The position numbers and the translations under genes are program-made. A DNA stretch of 64,000 bases from Mytilus trossulus (lineage: Eukaryota), in assembly GCF_036588685.1 (NCBI RefSeq), contig NC_086376.1, positions 95,335,630-95,399,629 of the forward strand, written 5' to 3'. The first letter of the stretch is position 1, and each line of letters opens with the position of its first letter. Shown here piece after piece: positions 17,505 to 64,000 of the stretch. A model generated the notes under the pieces. It searched no databases, was not told the DNA's origin, and was given only the letters and a program-made list of their open reading frames with translations.

Positions 17505-20500
17505 TTAATTGTAAATAATTCCTATAAAAATATACGCGCATCCTGTGACCAATGAAAATAGGAATACCACAAATCCTACTCTGTCTAAAACTAAAGCATA
17601 GTGTATCCATAGCTCTGAATCGATCCTCTCTTTTTCACTTTCAGATGATGTTGAAATCTCTACTTCTTTCTCCTTTGACATTCTTTTTTCGTCCAAAGTG
17701 TTGAACAGCTTGGAAATGATTTTGTCCTTAAAAAATAAGATGATTAAATATTAGGGCGTTAACAGTTACAATTGGATAAATGTGTGTCCTTCAATCAATT
17801 TCTTAATGTAGGTCGCACTTTCACTTTATTTCCTAATGAAGGTCGCACTTTCACTTTATTCCCTAATGTAGGTCGCACTTTCACTTTATTCCCACATTTT
17901 CATTGTTTATAGTTCATGTATATTCTGTCAATACATACAGTTTGTTTCGCAAGTTATTCTTCTATGATATAACGTACTCATTTATAAGAAATTTTCAAAG
18001 GACACGAAAACAGTTCACCGTAAATATACCTCACATCTTTTGGGTATCGAAGCGATATAAAATTTGACAATCTGTATATACCCCTGTTCATTTTTTATAA
18101 CAGTAATTTGAACGTTCATGCCATATTTTTAACTATTTGTGCCCGGTTTATTGCTTTCTCGTTGGCGTTTTTTATATATCTTTTTTTTTATTTGTATTTA
18201 AGTACAAAAAAGACTTTCTCAAATCAGTGTTTGACTAATTTAAGATCAGAATCCTCATTACAAACAAAGTGAAATACTACAAAAGTAAAACAAGTACTAT
18301 ATTAAGACATAAATTATATTCATTATACGGTTGTATTACCTCATTCTGAGATGTTGTATATCTATTTTGTATTCTTGGTAGCTTTACGCACGTGATATGC
18401 GCAAGTGGTTTTAAAAGATAACATTTTGTAAATCGTGACATCGTTCTATCTCCCCTATGGTGAATATTCAAAACCATAACTTGCCATAATGATGATCCAC
18501 CACTTAAAATTAACGTAAAGCTAAAAAACATGGCTGAAATAAGAAAATATTTGACTATTATCACACTAATCATTTATATCAGAGGGATATTTTATGTATC
18601 ATCCAGCCTGTCAGCCCTTATGTCATAGGTTTGAACCCTGCACGCGGACGATTTGTTCGACTTAATCATAACTGAATAAAAAGTAAAATCACAAACATTT
18701 TGCAATTGAAGTCCCGAATAAAATGGCAATATCAAATGGTCAACAGATCAAACGAATGGACAACAACTGTCATATTCCTGACTTGGTACAGGCATTTTCA
18801 AATGTCGAAAATGGTGATTTGAACCTGTTTTTTTATCGCTTAACCTCTCACTTGTATGACAGTCGTGTCAAATTCCATTATTTCAGGTTTTTCTTTGCAG
18901 GTCGATGGTTCTCTCTGGACACTCTAGCTTCCTCCATCAATAACAAACTTGTTACAGGGATAGGCAAAATTTGTCTCTTCAATTTTTTTATTGGGTGTAT
19001 ATAGTCTTGGATTTTTGTGTCACGCAAATATCGATACTACTAAGTATTTATGGGTAAAGACAATCATATATGATTATGTTTTGTAGTTCTAATTGCATCC
19101 TTCAAATTGTCTTCTTTCGCTTTTCTCGTTTGTGCAAGTTAATGTGCTTTATTGTTATGTATTCAAGGTTATTTTTCGGCTATCAAGACTTCTAGCTAAA
19201 ATTACTTGAAATGATTTCCTACAAAAAAAAAGAAGAATAATGAAAATATATGTTCATCGACAACATGGAATAAAGTATACCAAATGTGGTTATTTTTATT
19301 TATATATTTCGGAGTCTTTCTGACATATTCCGTGTTTGGCACAACTTTTTCCTCATTTCCATGCTCAATTTTATTACAGCGGTCATTACTATTCTATATC
19401 GGTAAGACTGTCGGATTTTCAGTGATATAAATTTTATAATTACTAACCAATCCATGGAGTAGAATCAGCTGATGGTGGCAACTTGTCAGCAACAAGCAAT
19501 TGAAACACAGACATCGCCAACATAACTGTTAATTCTAATCCAACCTTCTCGCCGGAATCAACAGGAAGTAAAAACCCAAACGATGCCACCATTGTGATTA
19601 AAAATGATGGTACTATTATATTTGTTATGTAATAAGCTGGTTTTCGTTTTAAATAAATATAAAAAGTCACATCTACAAAGGGTTCCGGACAGCAACCGTA
19701 ATATACTTCGTGTCTTACGTTTGCTGCTTTTTCAACTATCCATTCAACATGTTCTTTCATGGAAGATAAATCGCCCTCAACGTTCTTAGATCGAATATCT
19801 AGTTGTAAACCATTATATGACCATGATCCAAACATTAACTCGCATACTTGACTGTCGAAAGGGAATTTTGCAACGTCAATAGGACACAACGCTTCGATTT
19901 TGGTTGGGAAGTTATAAGCGACATAACCATCTGAATAAATGAGAGCCCTGTAGTCTTTGAATCCATAAAATTCAGCCGAAATGCTACAAAACAATATACA
20001 TGTCAGTGCAAAAACAAATAAAAAATTCATGTTGATTTGATATTGGAATGTAGAGTTTTAGTAACCTTCATCTATAACCTTAAATTCTTTAAACCTTCAT
20101 ATAAGATGTAAAATTATAATGAGAAAAACAAACGGCTTAATTCATAACAATGCAATATCCGTTTTGAATTTTTCTTGGAGCTCAATACTTTTTTAATAAA
20201 ACCAAATATGACCAATATGAATAAACGGCAATCACGCAAATACAGGATCCTAACTTATGACAGACACATTTTGCGGAATCAAACATCTTTCCGAGCGCTC
20301 AATCCTCTCCTAACCTGGGTTAGTGGTGTAACATCATCCATATGAACAAAGTTTAAATATAATTTTCAAATTGCTAAAACATCGGTACAATGCACATAAA
20401 ACAACAAACTTAAAAACGATAACTACAAAGCACCGATATAAAAGTGAAACAGATACCAAAGGGAAAGTCAAACTAGAAAACAAACTGACGATGCCGTGGT

Positions 20501-33100: not shown

Positions 33101-36100
33101 TATGATTTGATTTTTTTCCATAAGAATAGTACTGATTCCCTGTCTGCATGAGCTACGATGATTAGTTAATATTCCCACGAATTTGCATGCCAGTTTGTTT
33201 GGTTTGTTTGAATGGGTTATTTACATAGATTACATACGTACAATCCACAAACTCAACAAAAACCAGGAATTACATGATTATTGACCGAGATTGTCGAGAA
33301 AAATTACTTGTCTATATTTTTGTGTTCTTCGGTGAATGATGATTAAATTTTCATAGTCTGATTCACAGGCACTTGTCTCAAAAAAAAATTTCCTATATAT
33401 TAAGGTATATAGGAAATTATTTTTTTGAGACAAGTGCCTGTGCCATCTGATTATAGGAAAAAACATTTAGAGACTAAGATATTTCTGTTAACAAATATGT
33501 ATTACCTTTCATAAAGTGTAATATCCGGTTTCCAGATGAGATCTATGGGTAAAACTATAGACTTTGTTCCGTTATAATCGTCAGGGTTCCACTTCAGATG
33601 ACAGTCTACCCAGGCCTATAAAATAATACAAATCACCGTAAGTGTCTTACTCATATTATATTTGTTTAAAATACTTCTAAGACCATGTCAAAATAACAGT
33701 CTTGTGATGGTTCAACGACATGTCATAGACGAAACATAAGCAAAAGATACTGACTGTATTAATTCAGCTAAACCATATTACAAACATCATCGCTGGATTA
33801 TTCCTAAATGGTAATAGACAAACATTTAATCAAGTCACTTGTCAGTAGTCTAGAACATTTTTCAGGGTACCTTTCTTCGAACATTCCTTCGGACACTTTT
33901 ATCTGAGAACAGATCTTAGACCAAATCTTAAGAAACGTTCATCTCAGAACATATCTTATGACACTTTTGTCTTAGAACAGATCTCGGAATATATCTTAGG
34001 AAATGTATATTTTAAAACATATCCGAGGACATTAACTTATACCAGGTCTGAGGAAACCTTTATCTTAGGACACTTTAGCTTAGAACGTATCCTAGGAAAC
34101 TTTTATAATCATACTTTTACTTGTTGGTCTTGTACATCTAGCTACCAATTGTGTTATCATGGTTACTCTTAACTCGACATGTTTACTTACTGTTGATTAC
34201 TTACATCATCTTAGTTATTTAGACGGTGAAATAAAAGTAAATATTTCTATCCAATAAAGGATTGGTTTGGGTACGGAACGACCGGATACCACAACTACCC
34301 TCAAAACTGAATTACAATAGTAAAAAATAAAAAACGTAAAATCTACTAACCAATCGCATCCATACGTTAAACTGTACTGTCTGTTCTGGTTCGTTCTGCA
34401 AGATGAAAGGGAAACAATATGAATGAATGAATCTTTATTGCATTAGCAACAACATTGCTTTAGCATAAAACAAGGTATATACAAATATGACAAATATGAC
34501 AGAATACAGAGAACAATTAAATAGGTTAAATAATGCAGAGATAACTTATAATAATATAAATAATCATATATTAACTGATAATTTGCAATCTTAGTTTCCA
34601 TGCAGCTTTAAGATAATTACATAGATTTTTTGTTAAGCTTTTTGACCCAGCTTGTAACAGAAAAATTAGCTTTCGTGTATTTGGCCATGAACAATAATAC
34701 TTTGGCAAAAAATTACATCTTAGTGATCTATATGCAGGACAAATCAACACAAAATGATATTCATCTTCAATATTATTCATTTTACAACATTTACAAATAC
34801 GATTGACTCTAGGAATATTGTCATAGCGACCTGTTTCTATATATAATTTTAAGCTTCCACTACGTTGTTTTGTAAGTATATTGGTATTAAAATCATATTG
34901 TAAATAATTCTCCATACAAAAATCTAGTTTGAAACATTTATAGATAGACAGTTTTTCACAGGCATTAATACTAGCATACCAGCTTTGATAATATTGATCG
35001 TTGATACGTGATTTAATAAGGTCAAATGACACATTTATGTGATCCTGGTTAATCCATATATAATTCAAACCTAAACTAAACAAAAGGTCTCTTACATTGG
35101 ATGCCCAGTTTGTTTTGCCGTTAGTAGCATCAATACATAAAACTTTATATACATCATACACAATATTTGGTTGGTCCTTAATTAAATGCAACCAATATTT
35201 AACAATTCTATATTTTCTTGAAATACACATCGGAAAGTGTCCGAGTTCACCACATAAAAACAAGATTGGAACAGTTTTACCCAAGTTAAGTATATATCGA
35301 CAAAAACGATTATGAACATATTCTACTTCGTTGGCCCGATGAAATCCCCACACCTCGGACGCATAGTTCAGAACGGATCCAATCATACTATTGAATAAAA
35401 AACACTGTTGAATTGGACCAATGAATTCTCTTTTCATAGAGTTGATCAAAGATGATAGAGCTCTAGCTCCCTGTTGTGCCATTCTTTTTTGAGTTTGAAC
35501 AAATTTGCCATTGAAATGTAGCAGCATACCAAGGTATATATATGATTTGACGATTTCAAGTTCTTGGCCTTCGAAATAAAAATGGTCAGTTACGGGCTTC
35601 CAACCATTGCGAAAAACAACAATTTTTGTTTTGTCCGTATTTACAGTTATATTCCATCTCCTGCAGTAGAATGAAAGTTTATCTAACAAAATTTGCAATG
35701 CATCGGGAGACTTTGCTAGCAGAACTGTATCGTCAGCAAATAATATCAAATATATGAGGTAACCATTAAGTTCGAATATGTCACCATTGTTATCAACTTG
35801 TATATCACTGATTATATCATTTATGAAAAATAGGAACAAGAGAGGAGAGAGTGGTTCCCCTTGTTTCACTCCAAGAAAGTTTACAAACGCATCAGATAAG
35901 CCATCTTTCGTTCTAATTCGTAGACGCACGGTTTCATATACTGCTTTAATAATTGTTATAAATTTTCCACTAACTCCACTTTTTAATAACTTGTATGATA
36001 TGAGATAGCTTTAGATTCGGTTTCACTCTATTTAAAGTGTTTACTTTGACATACATATCAAAATTATAGTTTATTTCTTAACGTGCAACTAAATATTTAA

Positions 36101-44546: not shown

Positions 44547-45617
44547 TACGGGGCGCCGAATGGGACTCTTGTGGTTTTGTACAAAATTCAATTCTGTCAT
44601 AACAAAATCATTTTTGTCTTACAAAACTATGTGCTGTAGACAAAATTCATTTTTGTCATGACAAAAGTCAATTTTGTCAAAAAGTTATGCAAATATAAAC
44701 TTATTTGCATACAAAATTGACTTTTGTTACCTGATAAGGAAATTAAAACACAAAAGTCAATTGTGTTAGACAAAATTGAGTTTTGTGAGACAAAATTGAG
44801 TTTTGTGAGACAAAATTGAGTTTTGTGCGACAAAATTGAGTTTTGTGAGACAAATTCAATTTTATTAATTTTGTCTCACAAAAGTCGATTTTGTGAAGAC
44901 AAAATTCAATTTTGTGCGACAAAATTCATTTTTGTGACAACAAATTCACTTTTGTGATACAAAATTGACAAAATTGAATTTTGTCTTAATTTTGTGAGAC
45001 AAAATTCAATTTTGTAAATTTTGTGACGACAAAAGTAAATTTTGTGACGACAAAAGTCAATTTTGTGACGACAAAAGTCAATTTTGTGACGACAAAAGTC
45101 AATTTTGTGACGACAAAATTCATTTTTGTGACGACAAAATTTACTTTTGTGAGACAAAATTGACTTTAATGAGACAAAATTGACTTTCGTGAGACAAAAT
45201 TGACAATATTGAATTTTGTCTCTCACAAAAGTCAATTTTTGTTTCTTTTGTTAAACAAAATTGACAAAATTGAATTTTGTCTCAATTTTGTAAGACAAAT
45301 TGAATTTTGTCAATTTTGTCTCACAAAAGTCGATTTTGTATGCAAATTAGTTTACAGAATCCAAACTAAACTAATTTGCATACAAAATTGACTTTTGTCG
45401 CCTTATTTTCAAATTAGACAAGTCTGTGTAACAAAAATGAATTTTGTCATAACGAAAGTGACTTTTGTCCACTGAAAGATAATTTTGTATGACAAAAATT
45501 TTAAATTTGTAGCACGTACAAATCTTGTTAAACTGAACTCATTTTTGTTGAACAAAAGTCACTTTTGTCCGTACAAAACTGAATTTCGAGCACAGGAGTC
45601 CCATTCGGCGCCCCGTA
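44547..45617 (+). mobile_element. Foldback-like non-autonomous TIR element, copy A
   Basis: TIRs TACGGGGCGCCGAATGGGAC / GTCCCATTCGGCGCCCCGTA. The interior is made of acaaaa/ttttgt subrepeats of about 20-30 bp. Confidence 0.85.
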
Positions 45618-45627
45618 GGGTAGGGTG

Positions 45628-46873
45628 TACGGGGCGTCGAATGGGACTCTTGTGGTTTTGTACTCAAAATTCAATTTTGTACGGACAAAAGTGACTTTTG
45701 TTCAACAAAAATGAGTTCAGTTTAACAAAATTTGTATCATACTACAAATTTAAAATTTTGTCATACAAAATTATCTATCAGCGGACAAAAGTCACGTTTG
45801 TCATGACAAAATTCACTTTTGTTACACAGACTTGACTTTTGTTACCTAATTTGAAAATTGGGCGACAAAAGTCAATTTTGTATTCAAATTAGTTTAGTTT
45901 GGTTTCTGTGAACTAATTTGCATACAAAATCGACTTTTGTTACACAAAATTGACTTTTGTGAGACAAAATTGACAAAATTGACTTTTGTGAGACAAAATT
46001 GACAAAATTGACTTTTGTGAGACAAAATTGACCAATTGTGAGACAAAATTGACTTTTGTCTCAACAAAATTGACAAAATTGAATTTTGTCTCAACACAGT
46101 TGATTTTTGACTCACGAAAGTCAATTTTGTCGTCACAAAAATGAATTTTGTCGTCACAAAAATGAATTTTGTCGTCACAAAATTGACTTTTGTCGTCACA
46201 AAATTGACAAAATTGACTTTTGTCTCAACAAAATTGACAAAATTGATTTTTGTCTCAACAAAATTGACAAAATTCACCTTTGTCTCAACAAAATTGACAA
46301 AATTGATTTTTGTCGCAACAAAATTGACAAAAATGACTTTTGTCTCAACAAAATTAAAAAAAATGACTTTTGTCTCAACAAAATTTACAAAATTGAATTT
46401 TGTCTCACAAAATTGAGTTTTGTCTCACAAAAGTCAATTTTGTCTCACAAAAGTTAATTTTGTCTCACAAAATTGAATCTTACCTCACACAATTGACGTT
46501 TGTGATTTAATTTCCATATCAGGTAACAAAAGTCAATTTTGTATGCAAATATGTTTATATTTGCATACCTTTAAGACAAAATTGACTTTTGTCATGACAA
46601 ATATGAATTTTGTCTACAAAAATGAAATTTGTCATGACACAAATGAATTTTGTCTACACAAATGAATTTTGTCTACACAAATGAATTTTGTCTACACAAA
46701 TGAATTTTGTCTACACAAATGAATTTTGTCTACACAAATGAATTTTGTCATCACAAAATTGAATTTCTCACAAAACAAGTCTGTAGCACATAGTTTTGTA
46801 AGACAAAAATGATTTTGTTATGACAGAATTGAATTTTGTACAAAACCACAAGCGTCCCATTCGGCGCCCCGTA
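45628..46873 (-). mobile_element. Foldback-like non-autonomous TIR element, copy B (inverted relative to A)
   Basis: Same TIRs. Its left interior is the reverse complement of A's right interior. It is flanked by GGGTG on both sides (candidate TSD). Confidence 0.85.
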
Positions 46874-47791
46874 GGGTGGGAATCCGGCTTACATGTTTAA
46901 TTTTATGTGTTACATATTTGTTTTTCATTTTTTGTACATAAATTAGGCAGTTATTTTTTTTTGTTTGAATTGTTTTAAATTGTCATTTCGGAGTCTTTTA
47001 AAACTGACGTTGCGGTATGTGCTTTGCTCATTGTTGAAGGCGGTATGGTGACCTTTAGTTGTTAATTTCTATGTCATTTGGTCTCATGTGGAGAGTTGTC
47101 TCATTGGCAATGATACCACAGCTTTTTTTATGTTAACTCTTCAGATGGATACAAATCGAAATACATCAAACAAAAACATAATGGACGTGACATGCAGGAT
47201 ACCTGTAAATTTCAACAACAAGACACTAAGTACAGATCTGAAAGTACTCGCAGTAACTCACAGCTAATTCAAAGCCAAAATTATAGACATATGAGCTGAG
47301 ATGAAATGACATCCGAAAGTTTTTGTGTGTTTTGTTTATGATTTTATTTGACTGGCACTTTATCTTTACCGGAAAGGCAATTTCGATGTACACAAAAGTC
47401 AAACAATGGTTTTAAAGGCAATCGAGAAAATACATTCTATTATACGAGGGTGTGATACACGTTAATACAAGACATAGTTTTATGTCGATAACTTTTTAAT
47501 ATTTAAAAAAGAGACATATTTCTAATGTGAACTAGAACCCACCCATAATATAGCAAACTAAAATATAAAAATCATGTAAAATAAATAAATGATAAAATCT
47601 GATTAAGTCATAGTAGGGTCATACTAATAAAACAAAGGATATATATTAACAAATTATATAGTGCCTTGGGACAAATGTGGCTGATTTGTAATGACATTAG
47701 AATTTTATCTAAAGTTTTGTCTATACTAAGCGTCCAGCCATCCACAAAGATCAGATAAGCAGCAAAGCCTGCAGAAATATTACAAGCGAGC

Positions 47792-47849
47792 ATGTCAGAA
47801 GAGTCAGTCCTGGTGGTGGTGAGCATCAACTTATATCACTGTACTGCAG
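47792..47849 (+). other. Probable upstream exon of the Ig/chitin-binding gene (uORF or alternative signal-peptide exon)
   Basis: ATG at 47792 with -3 A, reading MSEESVLVVVSINLYHCTA, ends at a strong phase-1 donor CAG|GTAAGA. Confidence 0.45.
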
Positions 47850-48269
47850 GTAAGATTGGAAAATTTGATTTAATGAACACTTTTATCCTTTAAAACTATT
47901 TTGAAAAATTATGCGGCTTTTGTGTTGTGAAATATTTAAAGTCAAAACGTACTAAGTTGCTGAAAGTTTTATTTATCTTGTGAAAATATGTTTTCCCTAT
48001 ATTATGTCAATTACATGGAGATTCAAAAGGAATAATATCATTGTAAGCTTAGTTGCGGGTGGTACCTCTTGTCTCAGTACGTGTATGTTCCATGTACAAA
48101 TAGTTTGACTAGTATCGAATATGTTTTTTATACAATACAATGGTGTTTATCACAAATCACATTTTAAATATAGTGACAAAACGCCAAATAAACAAAGTTC
48201 TGAAAATGTGAATACTGATTATACAGACAACAATTGCTCATCTGAATTTCACATTAATCTCGCATGCAA

Positions 48270-48570: not shown

Positions 48571-51163
48571 GTTAAATATGCCTGTGTATAACAGAATGGC
48601 CGGTGTGATAGAAGCTCGAACTGTTCAAAGCGTAAATGTTCGTGTTTACTGTTCGTATGTTGTTTTGTTTTGGTTCTTGCAGCTTTAGCTGTTTGTTTTT
48701 TAAAGGTATATTTCTTTGCTGTTGCATAAAATTACATTGGTTTCTTTCCTACCATTGTTTTTCTTTTCTAAAATTGTCCTTTTTATTTCTCTGAATTTTT
48801 ATTTAGTACTGACAATTTCATTATTTTCCTTAATATAGCAATTATATATTTTAGAAACAAAACAGTTAAAAATTATTAGTTGATAATTTATTCGTCAAGG
48901 CTTTATAAAAGTGTATTTTTAAGCAATAACAGATATTCAAGTCTATTTTTCTCGTAAATATGATGTATCAAGTTTAGCTTTAGGTTATTGTAGGACTATT
49001 ATCACAAGATAATCCGATTTATTTTAATACACCGTTTGAATATCATGTCAGAATTTATAATATACTTAACTAAATCCATCCATACAAACATACATTTGTA
49101 TACTACTTTGTATGTTTACGTATTAGGTTATGGTTTAATGATGTTTATTTTCTTGCTAATGATTAGAATTAAAATGATCTTTTAACAAATGTACTCTTAA
49201 ATTTGGTATTTTGGATAAAAGACGTTAAATATATAAAACGTTTTTGAGCATAACAAAATATAATTGTACACAGAACAGTCATACACATCCAATCTAGGTC
49301 TACTTTGCATGATCGAGCTGCAACCTTAACTTTAGCACAATCATAGTATACTTCTATGAACCCAGAACTTATATAATTAGTTATTAAAGGTAGCAGGATT
49401 ATAACACCGTCTGTAATATTTGAATCATTTCATTGCCGCAGCACTGGCACATGCTTGTTATTGTGTTCTTTTTAACTAAACATGTATGTGTGTGTGTGTG
49501 TCTGTCTCTGTGTAAGTCGGTGCACTACTTATTTATTTATTCATATAATTCTATCCAACCTTGCGTGCCTATGTTCGTACTTTTTGTGGCAATTTTATTT
49601 TTTTGTCGAGCCTCACTGGTGAGTCTTTTATATACGAAACGCGGATCTGGCGTACACATTTTTAACCTGGTACATAGGAAGGTTTATCAAAAAAGTAAAA
49701 TCACAAAAATACTGAACTCCGAGGAAAATTCAAAACTTAAGTCCCTAATCAAATGGCAAAACCAAAAGCTCAAACACATCAAACGAATGGATAACAACTG
49801 TCATATTCCTGACTAAGTACATGCATTTTCTCAGCGGTATATAATGGCGGATTAAACCTGGTTTCATAGCTAGCTAAACCTCTAACTTGTGTGACAGTCG
49901 CATAACACTGTTTATTTTAATATCCCAGAATGTTTTCTTCTTTTTTTGATCCCTTCTCTATGCAGAGATATGAATGTAACTAAAGTGTACAGTTTTGTAT
50001 ATCAAAATCTGTGAGTCTCAGAGTATCTGTTGATTAAACAATGTATGATGAAAAAAGTATTGCAAAATAACTCAAAATCAATATGGCAATTTGCTATATG
50101 GAATCTCAAAAACAATTCTAAATTTTCATGTTTGTGATATCTTGTTTTACTGCCTTTTTTAATTTTTAATGTGTAATTAAACATTTATTTTACTAAAATA
50201 TTTGCTTGATCATGTTGATAAAATGACACGAAGAGATTGTGTTGATAGGCGAATGGCCTGAGAGAATACATGACATACATGGTTTGACAATACTATTACA
50301 ACTCATACATATACATATGCATTAACGCAAAACTGAGGCCAACAAGAACATATCTAAGATTATTTAAGATAAACAAAATCACAACAAATTAGATTCCATT
50401 AAAAGCCCGACAAATGATTTATATAACATTTTACTACCTAATACTGGATGCTTGTGCATAAACATAAAAGTTAGAGGTCAACGAGTACATGTTTTAGATG
50501 TCTTATATCCATTTATTACACATTAAGTACCATCAAAAGCTCGACAAATATCATATTATTTTCAATAGTCCTTTTCAATTAAAAAAATATGTAAAACGTT
50601 GTTGATAATTACATCGCATTACAATATACTCCATTTTAAGATATCTATGGAGATGAATATACCTTACCCCTCAGTTCCTGAACAGTTTTGGAGAGAGTTG
50701 TTTCTCTTATCAGACAAATCATTTAAACAATATAAAGCCCAATAAGACAGACAGCTACTTTTAAAGTATTTGTCATGGGAATCCAGAATATACCTTTTTT
50801 TCAAGACTAAAACACACACAGAAGCAGTTAGGTATTGTGATCTCATATTCTTTTATAGTGCGGTATTTTAATTTATAAATTTGATAATAAAAATGATTTG
50901 ACTACAGTGAGTATGTTTCCCTCTCTGGTACTTCACTTAGTTCAAGTAAAAATTGAGAATAACATGTCATCATCCTCTCTAGTGCTTCACAAAGGTTCAA
51001 AATTACAATTAAAAGTATTTGAACAAAAGAATATAAATGCACGAAATATGTGTACTATTCCTTAATTTCTTAAAAGATTTTATTTTTTTAATATTTTCAA
51101 TCTGTTATTGTTTTTAGAACCCTAAAAAGAAGACTTTGTTACTGAAACATCTGAACGTATACC

Positions 51164-54100
51164 ATGGCTTCTAGCACATCCCTACAGGCACACAAATATA
51201 AGTATGGATTTCAAAGGTCCAAAGGAAATAAGTTTAAATGGTATCTGATCCTGGCTATCAGTATTGTGTTTGTTGTATTGGCGGTCACTGTCATAGGTCT
51301 GACGATTTACCTCACGAGCGAAAACAACAAAACAGGTACGTAGCATAGAGGTTACTCGGCTACCTTCTATCTCACAGCTTGGATTCGAGCATCATGGATA
51401 AAATATGTATAATGCTGTTTGTTTTTTTAATTTGCTAAAAGTTTTAAAGTTTTATAATGCACTAAATCACCGAAAGTTCAGTCTTTTCAATATTTCTTTG
51501 TGTGTGACTATCCCATATATAATCATACAGTCAAGTGATTTTAAATTGACTGATCTATTGGTGGTTTATATGAGTGGTATAACGTTTGCTTAACCGACAG
51601 ATGGTCATATAAATGGTTTAATATTTACTGTACGCAGAGAGGATCAATTTCTCTGAACATTAGCACCATTGCTATGTATAGAGCTTATGGCTCCTTTCAA
51701 AAAAAATATGTTAATGTACAATATATTTCTTCATAACTTGTCCTAACAACCACATTAGATAAACTATGAATTATTTGTTTTTTGCTTATGTTACTAGTTA
51801 CATGTACGTTATGACCTCTTGTTAAAACACCCATGTACTTTGAAATTCCAAGTAAAAACACCCATGTTTTATTTTTGTTAATTAACAGGTGACAAAGATG
51901 CGCAATATGATTCTGGAGATGAGGACACAGGTATGACAAATATATTATAATGTTTCTCATAAACGAAAAAAGTAACATTTTAATAGAAATTTTTAATGGA
52001 AATAATAGTTGCTATTTTTCTTGTTTGCAATCTTCACGTACGTACTAAGACAGTTGTTTCATGTTTAAATCGGAGTGGTTTTATTTATAATTGAGATATT
52101 CTCCATACCTTTTTACATGTAATGCAATTTTTCCTTCAGTTTCAACAGCACAAACGGTATCTACAACTTCCGCAACAACTAGCCGGAGTAGCGTCAGCCA
52201 AACAACGCAAACGATCACAAAGTCTTCAACAGAAAGTCCAACTACTATAAAAATGACTTCATCAACTCAAAAGACAACTCCCGATATGTTGACTACTCAT
52301 CAGTCAACAACTTTGATATCTTCTCAACAGACAACCACTGAACCGACTACCCAACAACCAACCTCAACCACACAACCGTCAACAACTGTAAACACACCTC
52401 TTTCTACCGAACAACAAACAGATAGAAAAAGTACTTTTTCAACTCAACAAAGTACCACAGAAGTGATTTCGTCGACTCAGAAAGCTACAATTTCAACAGA
52501 ACAAAGAACAACAGATAAAATGACGTCATCAAGTTCACAAACAACCGACGAATCATCAACAGTCCAATACTCTACGTCGAATGGTCCGGTAGTGTCAACC
52601 AGTGTGTCACCGTCATCAACAGTACAAGTCCCATCAACGGTGGATACAACAAGCACATGTAATACTATAGTTTTATAATTCTATCAAATAACATTCTTCA
52701 CAATTTTAAAGCTGGCTAAAAAGCCTAATTTTAAGAATATTTTAACTTGACAACTTTTACGTGTTGCAAAAAAAGACATTTTGTTACAAACATGTTAATG
52801 CCGATAAAAGATCTTTTAGCTTATAATTATAAATTATGATATACAACGTATGAAGCAATCTCATTTGACGTATTCATTTTTCATTACAATAGCACAAGCG
52901 ACTTATGTTGTTTAATTTTGTTTAAAAAGAAGCGTTTACTTGTTAAAAATATTTTGTCACTTTCATAACCAAAATTGGTTCTGACATGATCATTAATTTA
53001 CTGCGGATTTCAAAACATTTCTTTCGTGTCATGAAGTATTAGTAAATAACTTGTAACATAAATGTGATAATGATATGCTTTTGATATTTTTGCAGCAATT
53101 GAATTATCTGGATATAATATCAGTAGCTCATCCCCATTTTTACTAACTTGCGAGGTAAAAAATATTCCTGGATGGATTGATCTTTTGATTTATCGTCACT
53201 ATGGCAACAACCAATCAGGTCTGTTGGCTCAGATGACAGCAGGACCAATAGTTCCAACGGTTATTGTAGTCGATGATTCGCTAACTTTTTCAGCCAACCA
53301 TCACAGCGATGCCATAACCATGGTATTGATGGCTCAAAGTTTCGAATGCAACCATGCAGGGACGTACAGTTGTTCGGTATCGTCTGCAACTGTTGTCGTG
53401 TCAGATGAAACAGAAATTAAAGGTACAGTTTTACGAACTCTCAAGTCGCAGCTAAAACTTAAAAAAAAAAAACACCTCTGAGACTTTATGAATAAAGAAC
53501 AGTCAAATCCCAGCTAATCCATATAGAATGCTATAATCTTGAAATGTACAAATAAAGAACAGTCTCAAATCTCAGCTAATCCGTATATAATGTTATAATC
53601 TTGAACCATGAAGGGACGTACAATTGTTCGGTATCTTCTGCAACTATTGTCGTATCAGATGAAACAGAAATCAAAGGTACAGTTTTATTATGTCTTTAAT
53701 TTCAACTTATATGTAAAGAATGCTGAAATCTTGAACTTTATGAGTAAAGAACAATCTCAAATGGCAGCTAATCCATACATGGTTCTTTTTTACAATTTCT
53801 TGTCTTCCATTTGAATAAAGATGATTAATAACTGTTTTATCTGATAAACAAAGAAAATCAAACGGGTGATCTGAGCCGGATAGAACAAAGGAGCTGGTAT
53901 GTAAGCACGAAAATACACCACTTAATGGTGTTATTTGTCTTTTATAATTGGATTGTCTCCTTTGTATCGATTCTCCTTATTTACAAGAACTAAAGCATTT
54001 ATGTAAAAGGAAGACCGTGCATGGGCGACAACAACCTGTATCTTATTATGAAAAAGATTTCTTATTTTAAAAACGTTGGAATATTTTTTTTAAAAACGCA

Positions 54101-55625
54101 TCAAAAACAATTTAGATAATAGCAAAATGTAAACTCATTCTCTTTTTTATTAGTCGTTTCAGGACCACCGGAGATCTATTTTCCTATTGGGGTTGTTGAA
54201 GATAGAACAATGTCGTTGGACTGTATAGTAGAATTTGAGGGTACTTCCGGAGATATCAAATGGACATTTAGTCCGCCTGGATTAGGCAATATGTTTTACG
54301 ACTTGAGTATAGATCCAGACACAAAAAATAGTTCTATGAGTTGTACGACTAAACTGGAGAGCAAATTAACTTTTACCCCAGGGATGTACGACAATGGCTC
54401 AAGCTTTCGATGTGAAGTTGTGAATGCGGAGGGTTACAATGGTGCAACAGTTTTACAAAAGACGGTTCCATTTTATGTGTTACATAGTAAGTTAAAAAAA
54501 TAAAAACTTTGTAACTTTAGCCTATTTCATGCTATTACCCCTTTCACAGATATTATATTATTCTAATATGTTGTTTACCAATACTCTGTTATACTTTTTA
54601 GATTTGTAACAGCTAATTTTATTTTGTTATTTTGTTAAAACATCTACCGTTTTCTTTGAACGATGTAATTGACAAATTTAGAAATGATGTTGGATTACTT
54701 GAAAGTTAGTTCCGTTTTTTTTTAACAATGTGGTTATTCGATATGATCTTATTTCGTTTTTGAACAAATATAGGATAAAATTATTCTACGTTTACTTTGT
54801 TTTTGATAATTGCTTTTCATGTATCTTAGTTTGTATCGTTATGCCCCACCTACGATAGTAGAGGGGCATTATGTTTTCTGGTCTGTGCCTCCGTTCGTCC
54901 GTTCGTTCGTCCCGCTTCAGGTTAAAGTTTTTGGTCGAGGTAGTTTTTGATGAAGTTGAAGTCCAATCAATTTGAAACTTAGTACACATGTTTCCTATGA
55001 TATGATCTTTCTAATTTTAATGTCAAATTAAAGTATTGACCCCAATTTCATGGTCCACTGAACAAAGAAAAAGATAGTGTGAAGCTCAGGTTAAAGTTTT
55101 TGGTTAAGGTAGTTTTCTGATGAAGTTGAAGTCCAATCAACTTGAAACTTAGTACACATGTTAATTATGATATGATCTTTCTAATTTTAATGCCAAATTA
55201 AAGTATTGACCCCAATTTCACGGTCCAGTGAACATGTAAAATGATAGTGCGAGTGGGGCATCCATGTACTATGGACAGATTCTTGTTATTTATTTTTTCA
55301 TGAACATGCAATTTTATGTAAATTTGTCTTTTTATTTAGTTTTTCATGTATTTTTTTTTTGTAATTTTGTGTTTTATTTTGTTTTTCAGATTCAATCTGC
55401 ACAAATCGTATTTTCGAGATTTTTAATCATCCTTATCAACCATGTGGGAAAATAATATATTGTTCGGAAAATGGAATACTTGTTTTTGAAATTCCGTGTC
55501 CAACACCTGGTTACTGCTATGATGCATTGCTTACTGACTGTGTTCTGGAAAAAGACCTCAGTATTTATAATGAAACCAATACAACGATTGGACCAAGCTC
55601 AACTGGTGCGCCACCTATCTCTTAA
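51164..55625 (+). CDS. Type II membrane protein with mucin-like stalk, two Ig-like domains and a C-terminal chitin-binding type-2 (CBM14/peritrophin-A-like) domain (about 542 aa)
   Basis: Kozak accATGg at 51164. Exons, all joined by phase-1 introns: 51164-51335 (basic N-tail plus TM WYLILAISIVFVVLAVTVIGLTIYL), 51889-51930 (DKDAQYDSGDEDT), 52140-52658 (S/T-rich), 53096-53422 (LTC..W..AGTYSC), 54154-54486 (LDC..IKW..DNGSSFRC), 55390-55625 (C-x14-C-x5-C-x11-C-x5-C-x7-C, stop). Total 1629 nt in frame. Confidence 0.85.
54838..55287 (-). mobile_element. Helentron-like non-autonomous element (HINE) with two internal repeats of about 169 bp
   Basis: Hairpin atgcccc-acctacgatagtaga-ggggcat, (cgtt/cgtc) microsatellite, aggttaaagtttttggt at 54919 and 55088, terminal ggggcatcc..ttcttgtt. 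Confidence 0.7.
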
Positions 55626-56489: not shown

Positions 56490-59400
56490 ACTATTTGGAA
56501 ATAGTAAATCCAGACAATTCCCACAAACATAGAGATTAAAATAAGATTATCGAGTTTATCAAACAATTATTGTCAAAAGACAATTCCAACATACATGGAG
56601 ATCAAGATACCATTATCGGTTGTATCAAGGCAATTTTTATGTCAAAAGACTATTCCCACATACATGGAGATCAAGATAACATTATCGATTTTATCAAGAC
56701 GATTTTTATATCAACAGACAATTCCCACACACATAGAGATCACGATAACATTATCGATTTTATTAAGACGATGTTTATATCAATAGGAAATTCCCACACA
56801 CATTGAGATCAAAATAACATTATCTATTATATCAAGACGATGTTTATATCAACAGACAAAATTCACACACAGAGACATCAAGATAAAATTATCGATTGTA
56901 TCAAGGCGATTTTTATATCAACAGGAAATTCCCACACACATAGAGATTAAGATAACATTATCGATTGTATCAAGGCGATTTTTATGTCAACAGGCGATTC
57001 CCACATACATAGAGATCAAGATAATATTATCGATTGTATCAAGGCGATTTTTATATCAACAGACAATGTCTATATACATAATGATCAAGATAGCAGTATC
57101 GATAGTATCAAGGCGATTTTTATGTCAAAAGACACTTTTAACATACATGGACATCAAGATAATATTATCGATTGTATCAAGGCGATTTAAATGTCAGCAG
57201 ACAATTCCCTTATACATAGAGATCAAGATAACCTTATCGATTTTATCAAGACGATTTTTATATCAACAGACAATTTCCACACACATAGAGATCATGATAA
57301 CATTATCGATTTTATCAAGGCGATGTTTATATCAACAGGAGATTCCCACACACATAGAGATCAAGATAACATTATCCATTTTATCAAGACGATGTTTATA
57401 TCAATAGGAAATTCCCACACACATAGAGATCAAAATGACATTATCGATTATATCAAGACGATGTTTATATTAACAGACAAAATTCACACACAGAGACATC
57501 ACGATAACATTATCGATTTTATCAAGGCGATGTTTATATCAACAGGAGATTCCCACACACATAGAGATCAAGATAACATTATTCATTTCAGCAAGACGAT
57601 GTTTATATCAATAGGAAAATCCCACACACATAGAGATCAAAATAACATTATCGATTATATCAAGACGATGTTTATATCAACAGACAAAATTCACACACAG
57701 AGACATCAAGATAATATTATCTATTGTATCAAGGCGATTTTTATATCAACAGGAAATTCCCACACACATAGAGATCAAGATAACATTATCGATTGTATCA
57801 AGGCGATTTTTATGTCAAAAGGCGATTCCCACATACATAGAGATCAAGTTAATATTATCGATTGTATCAAGGCGATTTTTATATTAACAGACAATGTCTA
57901 TATACATAAAGATCAAGATAGCAGTATCGATAGTATCAAGCAATTTTTATGTCAAAAGACAGTTTTAACATACATGGACATCAAGATAATATTATCGATT
58001 GTATCAAGGCGATTTAAATGTCAGCAGACAATTCCCTTATACATAGAAATCAAGATAACTTTTTCGATTTTATCAAGACGATTTTTATATCAACAGACAA
58101 TTCCGACACACATAGAGATCAAAATACCATTATCGATTTAATCAAGACGATGTTTATATCAATAGGAAATTCCCACACACATACGGATCAAAATAACATT
58201 ATCGATTATATCAAGACGATGTTTATATCAACAGACAAAGTCCACATACATGGAGATCAAGATAACATTATCGATTGTATCAATACGATTTTTATATCAA
58301 CAGACAATGTCCACACACATAGAGATTACGATAACATTATCGATTTCATCAAGGCGACTTTTATATCAACAGACAATGTCCACATACATATAGATCAAGA
58401 TAATATCATCGATTGTATCAAGGCGATTTTTATGTCAAAAGACAATTCGCACACACAAACAGAGACATCACGATAACATTATCGATTTTATCAAGGCGGT
58501 GTTTATATCAACAGGAGATTCCCACACACATAGAGATCAAGATAACATTATTCATTTTATCAAGACGATATTTATATCAATAGGAAATTCCCACACACAT
58601 AGAGATCAAAATAACATTACCGATTATATCAAGACGATGTTTATATCAACAGACAAAATTCACACACAGAGACATCAAGATAATATTATCGATTGTATCA
58701 AGGCGATTTTTATATCAACAGGAAATTCCCACACACATAGAGATCAAGATAACATTATCGATTGTATCAAGGCGATTTTTATGTCAAAAGGCGATTCCCA
58801 CATACATAGAGATCAAGTTAATATTATCGATTGTATCAAGGCGATTTTTATATCAACAGACAATGTCTATATACATAAAGATCAAGATAGCAGTATCGAT
58901 AGTATCAAGACGATTTTTATGTCAAAAGACAGTTTTAACATACATGGACATCAAGATAATATTATCGATTGTATCAAGGCGATTTAAATGTCAGCAGACA
59001 ATTCCCTTATACATAGAGATCAAGATAACATTTTCGATTTTATCAAGACGATTTTTATATCAACAGACAATTCCGACACACATAGAGATCAAAATACCAT
59101 TATCGATTTAATCAAGACGATGTTTATATCAATAGGAAATTCCCACACACATAGGGATCAAAATCATATTATCGATTATATCAACAGACAAAGTCCACAT
59201 ACATGGAGATCAAGATAACATTATCGATTGTATCAATACGATTTTTATATCAACAGGCAATGTCCACACACATAGAGATTACGATAACATTATCGATTTC
59301 ATCAAGGCGACTTTTATATCAACAGACAATGTCCACATACATATAGATCAAGATAATATCATCGATTGTATCAAGGCGATTTTTATGTCAAAGACAATTC

Positions 59401-62400
59401 GCACACACACATAGAGATCAAAATAACATCATCGATTTTATCATGGCGATTTTTATATCAACAGACAATGTCCACATTCATGGAGATCAAGATAGCATTA
59501 TCGATTGTATCAAGGCGATTTTTATATCAACAGGAAATTCCCACACACATAGAGATCAAGAAAACATTATCGATTGTATTAAGGCGATTTTTATGTCAAC
59601 AGGCGATTCCCACATACATAGAGATCAAGATAATATTATCGATTGTATCAAGGCGATTTTTATATCAACAGACAATGTCTATATACATAAAGATCAAGAT
59701 AGCAGTATCGATAGTATCAAGGCGATTTTTATGTCAAAAGACACTTTTAACATACATGGCCATCAAGATAATATTATCGATTGTATCAAGGCGATTTAAA
59801 TGTCAGCAGACAATTCCCTTATACATAGAGATCAAGATAACATTATCGATTTTATCAAGACGATTTTTATATCAACAGACAATTCCCACACACATAGAGA
59901 TCATGATAACATTATCGATTTTATCAAGGCGATGTTTATATCAACAGGAGATTCCCACACACATAGAGATCAAGATAACATTATCCATTTTATCAAGACG
60001 ATGTTTATATCAATAGGAAATTCCCACACACATAGAGATCAAAATAACATTATCGATTATATCAAGACGATGTTTATATCAACAGACAAAATTCACACAC
60101 AGAGACATCACGATAACATTATCGATTTTATCAAGGCGATGTTTATATCAACAGGAGATTCCCACACACATAGATATCAAGATAACATTATTCATTTCAT
60201 CAAGACGATGTTTATATCAACAGGAAATTCCCACACACATAGAGATCAAAATAACATTATCGATTATATCAAGACGATGTTTATATCAACAGACAAAATT
60301 CACACACAGAGACATCAAGATAATATTATCGATTGTATCAAGGCGATTTTTATATCAACAGGAAATTCCCACACACATAGAGATCAAGATAACATTATCG
60401 ATTGTATCAAGGCGATTTTTATGTCAAAAGGCGATTCCCACATACATAGAGATCAAGTTAATATTATCGATTGTATCAAGGCGATTTTTATATCAACAGA
60501 CAATGTCTATATACATAAAGATCAAGATAGCAGTATCGATAGTATCAAGCAATTTTTATGTCAAAAGACAGTTTTAACATACATGGACATCAAGATAATA
60601 TTATCGATTGTATCAAGGCGATTTAAATGTCAGCAGACAATTCCCTTATACATAGAGATCAAGATAAACATTTTCGATTTTATCAAGACGATTTTTATAT
60701 CAACAGACAATTCCGACACACATAGAGAGCAAAATACCATTATCGATTTAATCAAGACGATGTTTATATCAACAGGAAATTCCCACACACATAGGGATCA
60801 AAATAACATTATCGATTATATCAAGACGATGTTTATATCAACAGACAAAGTCCACATACATGGAGATCAAGTTAATATTATCGATTGTATCAAGGCGATT
60901 TTTATATCAACAGACAATGTCTATATACATAAAGATCAGGATAGCAGTATCGATAGTATCAAGCAATTTTTATGTCAAAAGACAGTTTTAACATACATGG
61001 ACATCAAGATAATATTATCGATTGTATCAAGGCGATTTAAATGTCAGCAGACAATTCCCTTATACATAGAAATCAAGATAACTTTTTCGATTTTATCAAG
61101 ACGATTTTTATATCAACAGACAATTCCGACACACATAGAGATCAAAATACCATTATCGATTTAATCAAGACGATGTTTATATCAATAGGAAATTCCCACA
61201 CACATAGGGATCAAAATAACATTATCGATTATATCAAGACGATGTTTATATCAACAGACAAAGTCCACATACATGGAGATCAAGATAACATTATCGATTG
61301 TATCAATACGATTTTTATATCAACAGACAATGTCCACACACATAGAGATTACGATAACATTATCGATTTCATCAAGGCGACTTTTATATCAACAGACAAT
61401 GTCCACATACCTATAGATCAAGATAAAATCATCGATTGTATCAAGGCGATTTTTATGTCAAAAGACAATTCGCACACACACACAGAGACATCACGATAAC
61501 ATTATCGATTTTATCAAGGCGGTGTTTATATCAACAGGAGATTCCTACACACATAGAGATCAAAATAACATTATCGATTATATCAAGACGATGTTTATAT
61601 CAACAGACAATTCCCACACACATAGAGATCATGATAACATTATCGATTTTATCAAGGCGATGTTTATATCAACAGGAGATTCCCACACACATAGAGATCA
61701 AGATAACATTATCCATTTTATCAAGACGATGTTTATATCAATAGGAAATTTCCACACACATAGAGATCAAAATAACATTATCGATTATATCAAGACGATG
61801 TTTATATCAACAGACAAAATTCACACACAGAGACATCACGATAACATTATCGATTTTATCAAGGCGATGTTTATATCAACAGGAGATTCCCACACACATA
61901 GATATCAAGATAACATTATTCATTTCATCAAGACGATGTTTATATCAATAGGAAATTCCCACACACATAGAGATCAAAATAACATTATCGATTATATCAA
62001 GACGATGTTTATATCAACAGACAAAATTCACACACAGAGACATCAAGATAATATTATCGATTGTATCAAGGCGATTTTTATATCAACAGGAAATTCCCAC
62101 ACACATAGAGATCAAGATAACATTATCGATTGTATCAAGGCGATTTTTATGTCAAAAGGCGATTCCCACATACATAGAGATCAAGTTAATATTATCGATT
62201 GTATCAAGGCGATTTTTATATCAACAGACAATGTCTATATTCATAAAGATCAAGATAGCAGTATCGATAGTATCAAGCAATTTTTATGTCAAAAGACAGT
62301 TTTAACATACATGGACATCAAGATAATATTATCGATTGTATCAAGGCGATTTAAATGTCAGCAGACAATTCCCTTATACATAGAGATCAAGATAAACATT

Positions 62401-64000
62401 TTCGATTTTATCAAGACGATTTTTATATCAACAGACAATTCCGACACACATAGAGATCAAAATACCATTATCGATTTAATCAAGACGATGTTTATATCAA
62501 CAGGAAATTCCCACACACATAGGGATCAAAATAACATTATCGATTATATCAAGACGATGTTTATATCAACAGACAAAGTCCACATACATGGAGATCAAGT
62601 TAATATTATCGATTGTATCAAGGCGATTTTTATATCAACAGACAATGTCTATATACATAAAGATCAAGATAGCAGTATCGATAGTATCAAGCAATTTTTA
62701 TGTCAAAAGACAGTTTTAACATACATGGACATCAAGATAATATTATCGATTGTATCAAGGCGATTTAAATGTCAGCAGACAATTCCCTTATACATAGAAA
62801 TCAAGATAACTTTTTCGATTTTATCAAGACGATTTTTATATCAACAGACAATTCCGACACACATAGAGATCAAAATACCATTATCGATTTAATCAAGACG
62901 ATGTTTATATCAATAGGAAATTCCCACACACATAGGGATCAAAATAACATTATCGATTATATCAAGACGATGTTTATATCAACAGACAAAGTCCACATAC
63001 ATGGAGATCAAGATAACATTATCGATTCTATCAATACGATTTTTATATCAACAGACAATGTCCACACACATAGAGATTACGATAACATTATCGATTTCAT
63101 CAAGGCGACATTTATATCAACAGACAATGTCCACATACATATAGATCAAGATAATATCATCGATTGTATCAAGGCGATTTTTATGTCAAAAGACAATTCG
63201 CACACACACACAGAGACATCACGATAACATTATCGATTTTATCAAGGCGGTGTTTATATCAACAGGAGATTCCTACACACATAGAGATCAAAATAACATT
63301 ATCGATTATATCAAGACGATGTTTATATCAACAGACAAAATTCACACACAGAGACATCAAGATAATATTATCGATTGTATCAAGGCGATTTTTATGTCAA
63401 AAGGCGATTCCCACATACATAGAGATCAAGTTAATATTATCGATTGTATCAAGGCGATTTTTATATCAACAGACAATGTCTATATACATAAAGATCAAGA
63501 TAGCAGTATCGATAGTATCAAGACGATTTTTATGTCCAAAGACAGTTTCAACATACATGGACATCAAGATAATATTATCGATTGTATCAAGGCGATTTAA
63601 ATGTCAGCAGACAATTCCCTTATACATAGAGATCAAGATAACATTTTCGATTTTATCAAGACGATTTTTATATCAACAGACAATTCCGACACACATAGAG
63701 ATCCAAATACCATTATCGATTTAATCAAGACGATGTTTATATCAATAGGAAATTCCCACACACATAGGGATCAAAATAACATTATCGATTATATCAAGAC
63801 GATGTTTATATCAACAGACAAAGTCCACATACATGGAGATCAAGATAACATTATCGATTGTATCAATACGATTTTTATATCAACAGGCAATGTCCACACA
63901 CATAGAGATTACGATAACATTATCGATTTCATTAAGGCGACTTTTATATCAACAGACAATGTCCACATACATATAGATCAAGATAATATCATCGATTGTA
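56490..64000. repeat. 69-bp satellite array (about 109 monomers, continues past the window end) with higher-order structure
   Basis: attatcgatt at 56681, 56750... (period 69). Consensus tttatatcaacagacaattcccacacacatagagatcaagataacattatcgattttatcaagacgat. An ATCGAT palindrome is present in most monomers. Confidence 0.97.

Follow-up and report, generated by a model that had tools for sequence, protein, structure and literature searches.

A single-copy mussel gene, conserved across bivalves, encodes a predicted stalked type II membrane protein with two immunoglobulin domains and a divergent CBM14 module

The window analysed here, a stretch of 64,000 nt of Mytilus trossulus DNA, carries a gene of six coding exons for a 542-aa protein, preceded by a probable leader exon and containing a partial duplicate within one of its introns. 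The features are as follows.

47792..47849, plus strand: leader exon, probably non-coding, that contains an upstream ATG; donor GCAG/gtaaga at 47849/47850
51118..51335, plus strand: exon with an inferred 5' UTR from 51118 and the start codon at 51164; tail and predicted signal-anchor helix
51164-51335, plus strand: exon 1 as coding sequence, the first coding segment, ending in phase 1
51889-51930, plus strand: exon 2, a 42-nt acidic linker, phase 1-1, residues 59-71 of database protein P0013
52140-52658, plus strand: exon 3, mucin-like stalk, 173 codons, 54% Ser+Thr, Cys-free
53096-53422, plus strand: exon 4, Ig domain 1 (Ig1; V/I-like)
53604..53720, plus strand: partial duplicate, lying in an intron, of exon 4's 3' end and the first part of intron 4; 82% identity to 53350-53466
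54154-54486, plus strand: exon 5, Ig domain 2 (Ig2; C-type-like)
55390-55625 including the stop codon, plus strand: exon 6, divergent CBM14 (peritrophin-A) module and Ser/Thr-rich tail

All five introns run from GT to AG with pyrimidine-rich acceptors, all five junctions are in phase 1, and the six exon frames are all open. The translation of each exon is an exact substring, in the same order, of P0013 (542 aa), which NCBI lists as "uncharacterized protein LOC134716403 [Mytilus trossulus]", and the residues encoded by split codons (G58, V72, S245, V354 and N465) agree with this protein in every case. The six exons, phase-1 junctions and 542-aa product proposed in a preliminary description of this DNA are thus matched letter for letter, and its symmetric exons are likewise confirmed by the phase-1 position of all exon ends. 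P0013, being identical to the spliced product, represented it in all whole-protein analyses. Two other Mytilus models of the gene are faulty, P0015 being truncated and P0016 chimeric. When the 1.30-Gb genome was searched with the three domain exons, each matched only itself. The locus is a genuine single-copy mussel gene that has been uncharacterised so far.

The N-terminal tail, predicted to be cytoplasmic, is 26 aa long and basic, with six K/R and no D/E. It is followed by a predicted signal-anchor helix of 24 residues, with a Kyte-Doolittle 19-residue maximum of 3.09 at residues 28-46, and by an acidic linker with 7 D/E versus 2 K/R. A single internal helix with its positive side at the N terminus is the pattern of a type II signal anchor, and from this agreement of hydropathy and charge asymmetry we infer an uncleaved anchor and type II topology, as had been suggested for a helix behind a short basic tail. 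The basic region before the hydrophobic segment is longer in other bivalves than the 26 aa found in Mytilus, and bivalve orders share 28-48% identity over the juxtamembrane and TM region. The tail has tyrosines at positions 12 and 14 without YxxL/I, and no obvious signalling motif was found in it. The Ser/Thr stalk, earlier put at about 170 aa, measures 172 aa, and its length differs between Mytilus species. The 12 cysteines of the whole protein are distributed 3 + 3 + 6 over Ig1, Ig2 and the last module.

In the family alignment, Ig1 has the invariant residues C263, W271 and C337 together with an extra invariant cysteine, C329. Similarly, Ig2 has invariant C377 and C440 and an extra invariant C417; its tryptophan at the usual strand-C place is variable within the family. 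Pfam matches to the single exons were weak and under the cut-off, to Ig_2 (E 8.6e-4) and V-set for Ig1 and to C2-set_2 and C1-set for Ig2, with C2-set_2 reaching the cut-off in the scallop proteins. Searches of the PDB with the single Ig exons by phmmer returned nothing better than E>0.03. A family Ig profile matched antibody light chains (best E 1.5e-8), JAM-1 and DSCAM. The cysteine pair, the strand-C tryptophan and the profile match place the pair in the immunoglobulin superfamily, and the two Ig domains of the preliminary description are upheld. The back of Ig1 plus Ig2 align with the V and C domains of antibody light chains, Ig2 being the counterpart of the constant domain, and the language-model neighbours of Ig1 include V-set plus C2-set families. 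By these comparisons Ig1 appears V-like, while Ig2 looks C-type and not V-type. Comparison of Mytilus species gave 93-97% identity for the Ig domains.

The extra cysteines C329 and C417 share columns with extra V- and C-domain cysteines of a rabbit kappa chain, which we take to be Cys80 and Cys171, respectively. In rabbit kappa chains, Cys80 and Cys171 form a disulfide between the V and C domains (PMC10038998). The mussel Ig pair is probably locked by an interdomain disulfide between C329 and C417.

Exon 6 encodes a six-Cys module of about 50 aa and then a Ser/Thr-rich tail of 25 aa, which carries two N-glycosylation sequons and is followed by the stop codon. A PF01607 match had been expected for this exon and did not materialise: Pfam gave no CBM_14 match even at E<10, and the exon is missing among the 138 canonical CBM14 exons listed by a genome-wide scan. 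Set against the curated PF01607 cut-off of 22.1 bits, related fragments scored 22.2 (P0003), 18.8 (P0005) and 15.5 bits (P0009). Homology was detected by direct comparison. With exon 6 alone as the query against 1.84 billion proteins, phmmer retrieved P0002, which has 13 Pfam CBM_14 repeats, at E 9e-12, and P0006, which has three, at E 1e-4. Furthermore, hhalign aligned the family module with the P0006 repeats at a probability of 91% (P 9e-7, score 32.6); column-shuffled controls scored 10.2 +/- 2.5, and 0 of 150 shuffles reached 32.6. The module profile found nothing among PDB sequences at E<=10.

AlphaFold produced an unusable model (pLDDT 49) from exon 6 without an alignment; given a 12-row alignment of the module, it reached block-mean pLDDT values of 71-91 over residues 1-60. 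The latter model has 3+2 strands (8-12, 19-24, 28-33, 41-44 and 49-52), the three-stranded and then two-stranded sheet that defines the CBM14 fold. In a Foldseek search with this model the top 9 of 350,542 chains were all CBM14, with weak scores (E 0.1-1), and Aplysia EHEP was among the best matches at 29-31% identity. In VIA-align, 9 of 48,161 chains had Z>=2 and the top 7 were all CBM14, again with weak scores (Z 2.2-3.4). CBM14 structures are the only solved folds that top both searches, as anticipated for the last exon, at these weak scores. Taken together, the sequence and model comparisons indicate that the module is a divergent CBM14 by fold and ancestry.

The module retains canonical cysteines C1-C5 at canonical spacing, while canonical C6 is absent and an extra invariant cysteine stands between C4 and C5 in the motif G-x-C-Y-D. 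The scallop proteins terminate one residue past canonical C5. In canonical CBM14 modules the disulfides are C1-C3, C2-C6 and C4-C5 (PMC10619976). The C2-C6 bond would be impossible in the bivalve module, and the new cysteine may supply a replacement pairing. The HP..C, Y-C and aromatic-Asp positions common to canonical CBM14 repeats are invariant between bivalve orders. The module resembles known CBM14/peritrophin-A modules (tachycitin, the CBM14 of chitotriosidase, Avr4, Blo t 12, Der p 23 and Aplysia EHEP) in its size of about 50 aa, its 3+2 strands, its C1-C5 spacing and its aromatic and Asp positions before C5; it departs from the canonical form in having lost the partner of C2, in its G-x-C-Y-D cysteine and in lacking a Pfam match. 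The earlier view of a CBM14-like last exon therefore holds for fold and homology, but not for a textbook CBM14. Chitin-contact residues vary across the CBM14 family, and chitin binding is lacking in at least two proteins with this fold, Der p 23 and the mollusc protein EHEP, whose ligand is phlorotannin (PMC10619976).

The same layout of tail, TM helix, stalk, two Ig domains and module is common to the Mytilus, scallop and oyster proteins and to P0012, a protein of 481 aa; a partial clam model (277 aa) covers the Ig-Ig-module part only. Four bivalve orders have this architecture and keep the Cys, Trp, HP and YD columns invariant. P0012 is encoded without interruption on a contig of 3758 bp, which suggests a spliced transcript. 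Identity between orders is 38-47% for the CBM14 module, 27-40% for Ig2 and 16-30% for Ig1, making the module the best-conserved of these domains. A search with the full-length family alignment returned only Mytilus proteins and was swamped by low-complexity stalk words. P0022-P0024 were excluded from the alignments because their substitutions (P->L, R->W, A->V, T->I) resemble bisulfite-converted reads of an oyster gene. Relatives of the gene in the database are all unnamed, and literature searches on the locus names, on VCBP-like proteins outside chordates and on mollusc proteins with Ig and chitin-binding domains found no description of a bivalve Ig-Ig-CBM14 family. A 'follistatin-related protein' of the shell matrix, which combines CBD, Ig-like and LamG domains (PMC5379566), differs from the family in architecture. 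As judged from these alignments and searches, the family is conserved across bivalves and so far uncharacterised.

One of the proteins retrieved with exon 6, P0006, is a hypothetical protein of Tegillarca granosa in which an Ig2-like domain and CBM14 are joined to a TM segment and a tyrosine phosphatase. Over its first 151 residues it is collinear with Ig2 and CBM14 of the oyster member (E 4e-8). P0006 differs from the family in that its CBM14 is of the canonical six-Cys form (Pfam 85.8 bits), its orientation is type I and its phosphatase domain is intracellular. P0006 is an ab initio model that starts within its Ig domain, and so it may be a fusion artefact.

The preliminary description had likened the protein to the VCBPs. 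These are secreted proteins of protochordates, expressed in the gut, with two V-type domains together with a chitin-binding domain, and they are polymorphic and encoded by several genes (PMC2632668, PMC4757023, PMC7947342). The bivalve protein shares with them two Ig-superfamily domains followed by a C-terminal module of chitin-binding type, here a CBM14-type module. In contrast to the secreted VCBPs, it is predicted to be held by a signal anchor at the N terminus and bears a long mucin-like stalk; in place of two V-type domains, its profiles point to a weak V-set or Ig_2 match for Ig1 and C2-set_2 or C1-set for Ig2; and its gene is single-copy and conserved rather than one of a polymorphic set. 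Thus the domain order was rightly compared, whereas the predicted anchor, the C-type-like Ig2 and the lack of a gene family do not fit, and the likeness to VCBPs, which are known here from published descriptions, is one of layout only.

A second comparison concerns topology. In type II C-type lectin receptors such as DC-SIGN, langerin and CD23, a short N-terminal cytoplasmic tail and a signal anchor are followed by an extended stalk, with the carbohydrate-recognition module at the distal C-terminal end. The bivalve protein is built in the same sequence of tail, anchor, stalk and distal recognition module, but a CBM14 replaces the C-type lectin domain, the stalk is Ser/Thr-rich and mucin-like instead of a coiled coil, and two Ig domains are inserted. 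We regard this as an analogy of design and not as homology.

Our preferred reading, to which we give about an even chance of being right, is that the protein is a stalked type II glycoprotein of the cell surface that acts as a lectin-type adhesin or receptor with putative chitin binding. The basic tail and signal-anchor helix would hold it in the membrane, and the stalk, roughly 170 aa long and presumably stiff and O-glycosylated, would raise the ectodomain above the cell coat. Beyond the stalk would sit the V-like and C-like Ig pair, probably disulfide-locked, and at the tip a derived CBM14 module that has kept five canonical cysteines and the aromatic and Asp positions while losing C6 and gaining a new cysteine. 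By analogy with type II C-type lectin receptors, this module would present a putative chitin-binding surface to chitin fibres, whether in the animal's own chitinous matrices or on chitin-bearing particles at an epithelial surface. Since the gene is single-copy and undiversified and the CBM14 module is its best-conserved part, such ligands are favoured over a VCBP-like role as a diversified effector of immunity.

The CBM14 fold could also have been retained without chitin binding, as is the case in Aplysia EHEP and Der p 23; the protein would then be an IgSF adhesion or recognition molecule with a protein, a polyphenol or a different glycan as the ligand of its tip. We consider this fairly unlikely: the loss of the sixth canonical cysteine, the displacement of one cysteine, the missing Pfam match and the place of phlorotannin-binding EHEP among the best structural matches (PMC10619976) speak for it, but the HP..C, Y-C and aromatic-Asp positions are invariant between bivalve orders in what is the best-conserved part of the protein. 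The protein might instead be a membrane-bound pattern-recognition receptor of the immune system, a protostome analogue of VCBPs on haemocytes or mucosal epithelium. Its Ig pair would bind microbes, and the ligand of its CBM14 would be chitin, either foreign (fungal or other) or that of the gut or mucus. This seems unlikely to us. The Ig-Ig-CBM14 order of VCBPs (PMC4757023, PMC2632668) and the V-like features of Ig1 agree with it, but the gene has no paralogues, the 93-97% identity of its Ig domains among Mytilus species is unlike diversified immune families, the protein is predicted to be anchored rather than secreted, Ig2 is C-type-like, and the two tail tyrosines lack YxxL/I or any obvious signalling motif. 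That the gene is non-functional or an annotation artefact, its exons joined only by prediction software, is extremely improbable; the visibly wrong models P0015 and P0016 show that such errors occur in Mytilus, but six open frames with canonical phase-1 junctions, the same architecture and invariant columns in four orders, and the uninterrupted 481-aa relative on a 3.8-kb contig all speak against it.

Both the bivalve shell and several internal structures have chitin as their scaffold; fungi and much planktonic food are likewise marked by it. Literature searches found no cell-surface chitin receptor of molluscs. The bivalve Ig-Ig-CBM14 family offers a concrete, conserved and single-copy candidate for one, which standard annotation misses because its CBM14 module scores under the Pfam threshold. 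The preferred reading of a chitin-binding surface receptor can be carried further to a scenario that we hold possible but not probable, in which a V-like/C-like Ig pair and a re-wired CBM14 were brought together independently in bivalves, giving an ancient single-copy type II stalked chitin receptor that would be the convergent protostome counterpart of chordate VCBPs. If true, this receptor would couple cells to chitin as the framework of shell and periostracum, as the gastric shield, or as part of chitin-bearing food and microbes. Ig domains combined with a CBM14 module have until now been described for protochordate VCBPs; a protostome has them too, in a different form that is predicted to be membrane-anchored, and this bears on how often exon shuffling has combined immune-type and matrix-type modules.

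Some further features of the locus were observed. There are no N letters within the window. The intronic duplicate at 53604..53720 is absent from every database protein. The leader exon was called from the sequence and from the M. coruscus model P0015, which aligns to 47731-47850 and continues into the leader of the next exon, and its 5' boundary is approximate. Joined to the acceptor at 51117/51118, it is predicted to open a uORF of 21 codons, closed by a TAA in the exon that follows.

The gene under study is encoded by six exons on the forward strand, whose coding parts, read from the sequence, are as follows.

51164-51335, forward strand, exon 1
51889-51930, forward strand, exon 2
52140-52658, forward strand, exon 3 (stalk)
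53096-53422, forward strand, exon 4 (Ig1)
54154-54486, forward strand, exon 5 (Ig2)
55390-55625, forward strand, exon 6 (six-Cys module)

All five introns (553, 209, 437, 731 and 903 bases) have GT..AG borders and pyrimidine-rich acceptors, and the exons always end one base into a codon (phase 1). The exons were queried singly and unjoined. Exon 6 alone retrieved a 543-aa Mytilus edulis protein, and a follow-up search retrieved P0013, a 542-aa NCBI entry named 'uncharacterized protein LOC134716403 [Mytilus trossulus]'. P0013 contains each of the six exon translations as an exact substring, in the same order, and agrees at all five split-codon residues; it is very probably the database entry of this very gene and was used for whole-protein analyses. 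The six-exon, all-phase-1 model of the preliminary description thus coincides with the annotated one, also in its predicted length of 542 aa.

The protein starts with a hydrophilic stretch (residues 1-26) that has six Lys/Arg and lacks acidic residues. The sole strongly hydrophobic stretch follows at residues 27-50 (Kyte-Doolittle 19-residue mean 3.09), and seven Asp/Glu lie in the next 22 residues. By the usual rule, the long n-region, the 24-residue h-region and the charge asymmetry point to a signal anchor that leaves the N-terminus on the inner side, so that hydropathy and charge support the single type II TM helix proposed earlier. Exon 3 encodes 172 residues, of which 54% are Ser or Thr, nine are Pro and none is Cys. 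This agrees with the predicted Ser/Thr stalk of about 170 aa, which is mucin-like and presumably O-glycosylated.

A probable upstream exon lies at 47792-47849, with an ATG at 47792 and a strong donor (GCAG/gtaaga). When this exon is joined to 51118, a uORF of 21 codons results. Since the exon ends in phase 1 and its peptide is hydrophobic, a transcript lacking the TM exon would remain in frame, and its product might start with a signal peptide. No such isoform was seen, and the TM helix is kept in scallop and oyster isoforms X1 and X2 alike.

Exons 4 and 5 encode three Cys each and exon 6 encodes six. Against Pfam, the window's own Ig exons gave sub-threshold matches, to Ig_2 for exon 4 (E 8.6e-4) and to C2-set_2 and C1-set for exon 5 (E 0.03-0.05), while the second Ig domain of the scallop proteins is at the C2-set_2 cut-off. 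An 8-member family profile yielded 511 matches among PDB sequences at E<=1 (best E 1.5e-8); the 60 of these 511 that were listed are antibody light chains, JAM-1 and DSCAM, with many rabbit kappa chains among the best. Language-model neighbours are Ig clusters (0.93). The two Ig-like domains are supported. Furthermore, the family has two extra invariant Cys, C329 in Ig1 (8 residues before the F-strand Cys) and C417 in Ig2, which share alignment columns with the extra Cys that a rabbit kappa chain has in its V and C domains. We read the latter as Cys80 and Cys171, whose disulfide joins the V and C domains (PMC10038998). Ig1 and Ig2 may therefore pair as a V-like and a C-like domain, held together by a C329-C417 bridge.

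The Ig1 exon has been partially duplicated in tandem (53350-53466 and 53604-53720, 82% identity, 254 bases apart). The unit comprises the last 24 codons of the exon, its splice donor and the beginning of the intron; the copy within intron 4 (53604-53720) is missing from all database proteins.

The preliminary description expected the last exon to match Pfam PF01607. Exon 6 gave no Pfam match at E<10 and is not among the 138 canonical CBM14 exons listed by a genome-wide PF01607 scan. Its CBM14-like nature is supported by other searches. A phmmer search of 1.84 billion proteins with the 77 exon-6 residues returned 12 matches, among them other members of this family as well as P0002 (from Mya arenaria, named 'chitin-binding domain protein cbd-1-like', 13 CBM_14 repeats by Pfam; E 9e-12) and P0006 (a Tegillarca granosa ab initio model with 3 CBM_14 repeats; E 1e-4). 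Short related fragments scored 22.2, 18.8 and 15.5 bits on PF01607 (cut-off 22.1). With hhalign, the family module matched the P0006 repeats with a probability of 91% (P 9e-7) and a score of 32.6, against 10.2 +/- 2.5 (maximum 17.0) for 150 column shuffles.

AlphaFold, given a 12-row alignment, predicted 3+2 strands; for residues 1-60 the block-mean pLDDT was 71-91. The top nine Foldseek matches among 350,542 chains were Blo t 12, chitotriosidase CBM14, Aplysia EHEP, Avr4 and tachycitin, with Der p 23 at rank 11; with VIA-align, just nine out of 48,161 chains reached Z>=2, the first seven all CBM14. Individual scores are weak (Foldseek E 0.1-1; VIA-align Z 2.2-3.4), which is no surprise at 50 residues, and the weight of these model-based searches lies in the exclusivity of the CBM14 matches. 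As a lead only, protein-atlas neighbours are CBM_14 clusters without exception (0.85). Together, five lines agree that the module is a divergent CBM14.

Canonical CBM14 domains pair C1-C3, C2-C6 and C4-C5 (PMC10619976). The module's C1 to C5 align with these, whereas C6 is absent (the scallop proteins stop one residue past C5) and an invariant Cys is gained in G-x-C-Y-D, between C4 and C5. The new Cys presumably pairs with C2.

The tail-TM-stalk-Ig-Ig-module layout also occurs in M. edulis, M. californianus, two scallops (Mizuhopecten, Ylistrum) and an oyster (Saccostrea). For the clam Ruditapes there is a partial model of 277 aa that covers just the Ig-Ig-module part, and a 481-aa family protein is encoded on a 3758-bp contig that is probably a transcript. 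Named entries are labelled uncharacterized, hypothetical or Ig-like domain-containing, and none has a functional name. No non-bivalve protein with this layout was among the 12 phmmer matches to exon 6, a slight indication that the family is restricted to bivalves. Conservation across orders is strongest in the module (38-47% identity), compared with 27-40% for Ig2, 28-48% for tail plus TM and 16-30% for Ig1; the stalk keeps its composition alone. Each domain exon matches itself only in the M. trossulus genome (1.30 Gb).

In M. coruscus and M. galloprovincialis the gene is present as truncated or chimeric models. Both are faulty: P0015 (M. coruscus) translates the 5' leader and ends inside Ig2, and P0016 (M. 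galloprovincialis) runs from Ig1 into unrelated sequence. Three further proteins, P0022, P0023 and P0024, match the oyster module except for systematic substitutions of four kinds (P to L, R to W, A to V and T to I), as expected from translating bisulfite-converted (C to T) reads; we rejected them as natural variants and regard them as artefacts in the public protein collection.

The first 151 residues of P0006 align with the oyster Ig2-CBM14 part (E 4e-8). Its order is an Ig2-like fragment, canonical CBM14, a Ser/Thr stretch, a TM helix and tyrosine phosphatase domains. Either it represents a receptor phosphatase whose ectodomain is of Ig-CBM14 type, or the model has fused neighbouring genes. 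If the model is real, the Ig2-CBM14 cassette is also used as a receptor ectodomain.

We judge the chances about even that the product is a chitin-binding adhesin or receptor of the cell surface, a putative role read from sequence. Its design is that of stalked type II lectin receptors, here with a CBM14 module at the tip. Anchored as a type II protein and borne on its stalk, it would present the module to a constant ligand, for instance chitin of the animal itself or particles that carry chitin. That the CBM14 fold serves to bind some ligand other than chitin is rather unlikely. The HP..C, Y-C and Tyr-Asp positions common to the module and canonical repeats are invariant in the family, which favours retained sugar binding, but two cautions apply: chitin-contact residues vary among CBM14 proteins, and neither EHEP nor Der p 23 binds chitin (PMC10619976).

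An immune receptor in the style of the VCBPs is unlikely. VCBPs are polymorphic, gut-expressed protochordate proteins encoded by several genes (PMC2632668, PMC4757023, PMC7947342). The VCBP-like architecture proposed earlier holds only for the order 'Ig, Ig, chitin-binding-type module', whereas anchoring, stalk and gene number differ, and probably the type of second Ig as well; set against these descriptions, we class the protein as a new architecture from known modules, not as a VCBP. The gene is single-copy and little diverged, and constraint is strongest on the module; this fits a constant ligand better than a diversified immune effector. That the gene model is an artefact we consider very improbable.

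Two direct repeat copies in intron 5 (54917-55252; about 170 bases apart, 91-94% identical) look like a small non-autonomous mobile element, which they resemble in having G+C-rich 'ggggcat' motifs on both sides. Other features, including tandem channel genes upstream of the Ig-Ig-CBM14 gene, are as follows.

5322-6338, 18277-20030 and 31330-32589, reverse strand, three tandem paralogous Cys-loop ligand-gated channel genes (ligand-binding and M1-M2 exons)
34571-35929, reverse strand, 452-aa ORF resembling the reverse-transcriptase region of a non-LTR retrotransposon
44900-46460, several frames, satellite-like array with long repetitive ORFs
57060-63730, several frames, satellite-like array with a higher-order repeat and long repetitive ORFs, occupying the window's last 7 kb
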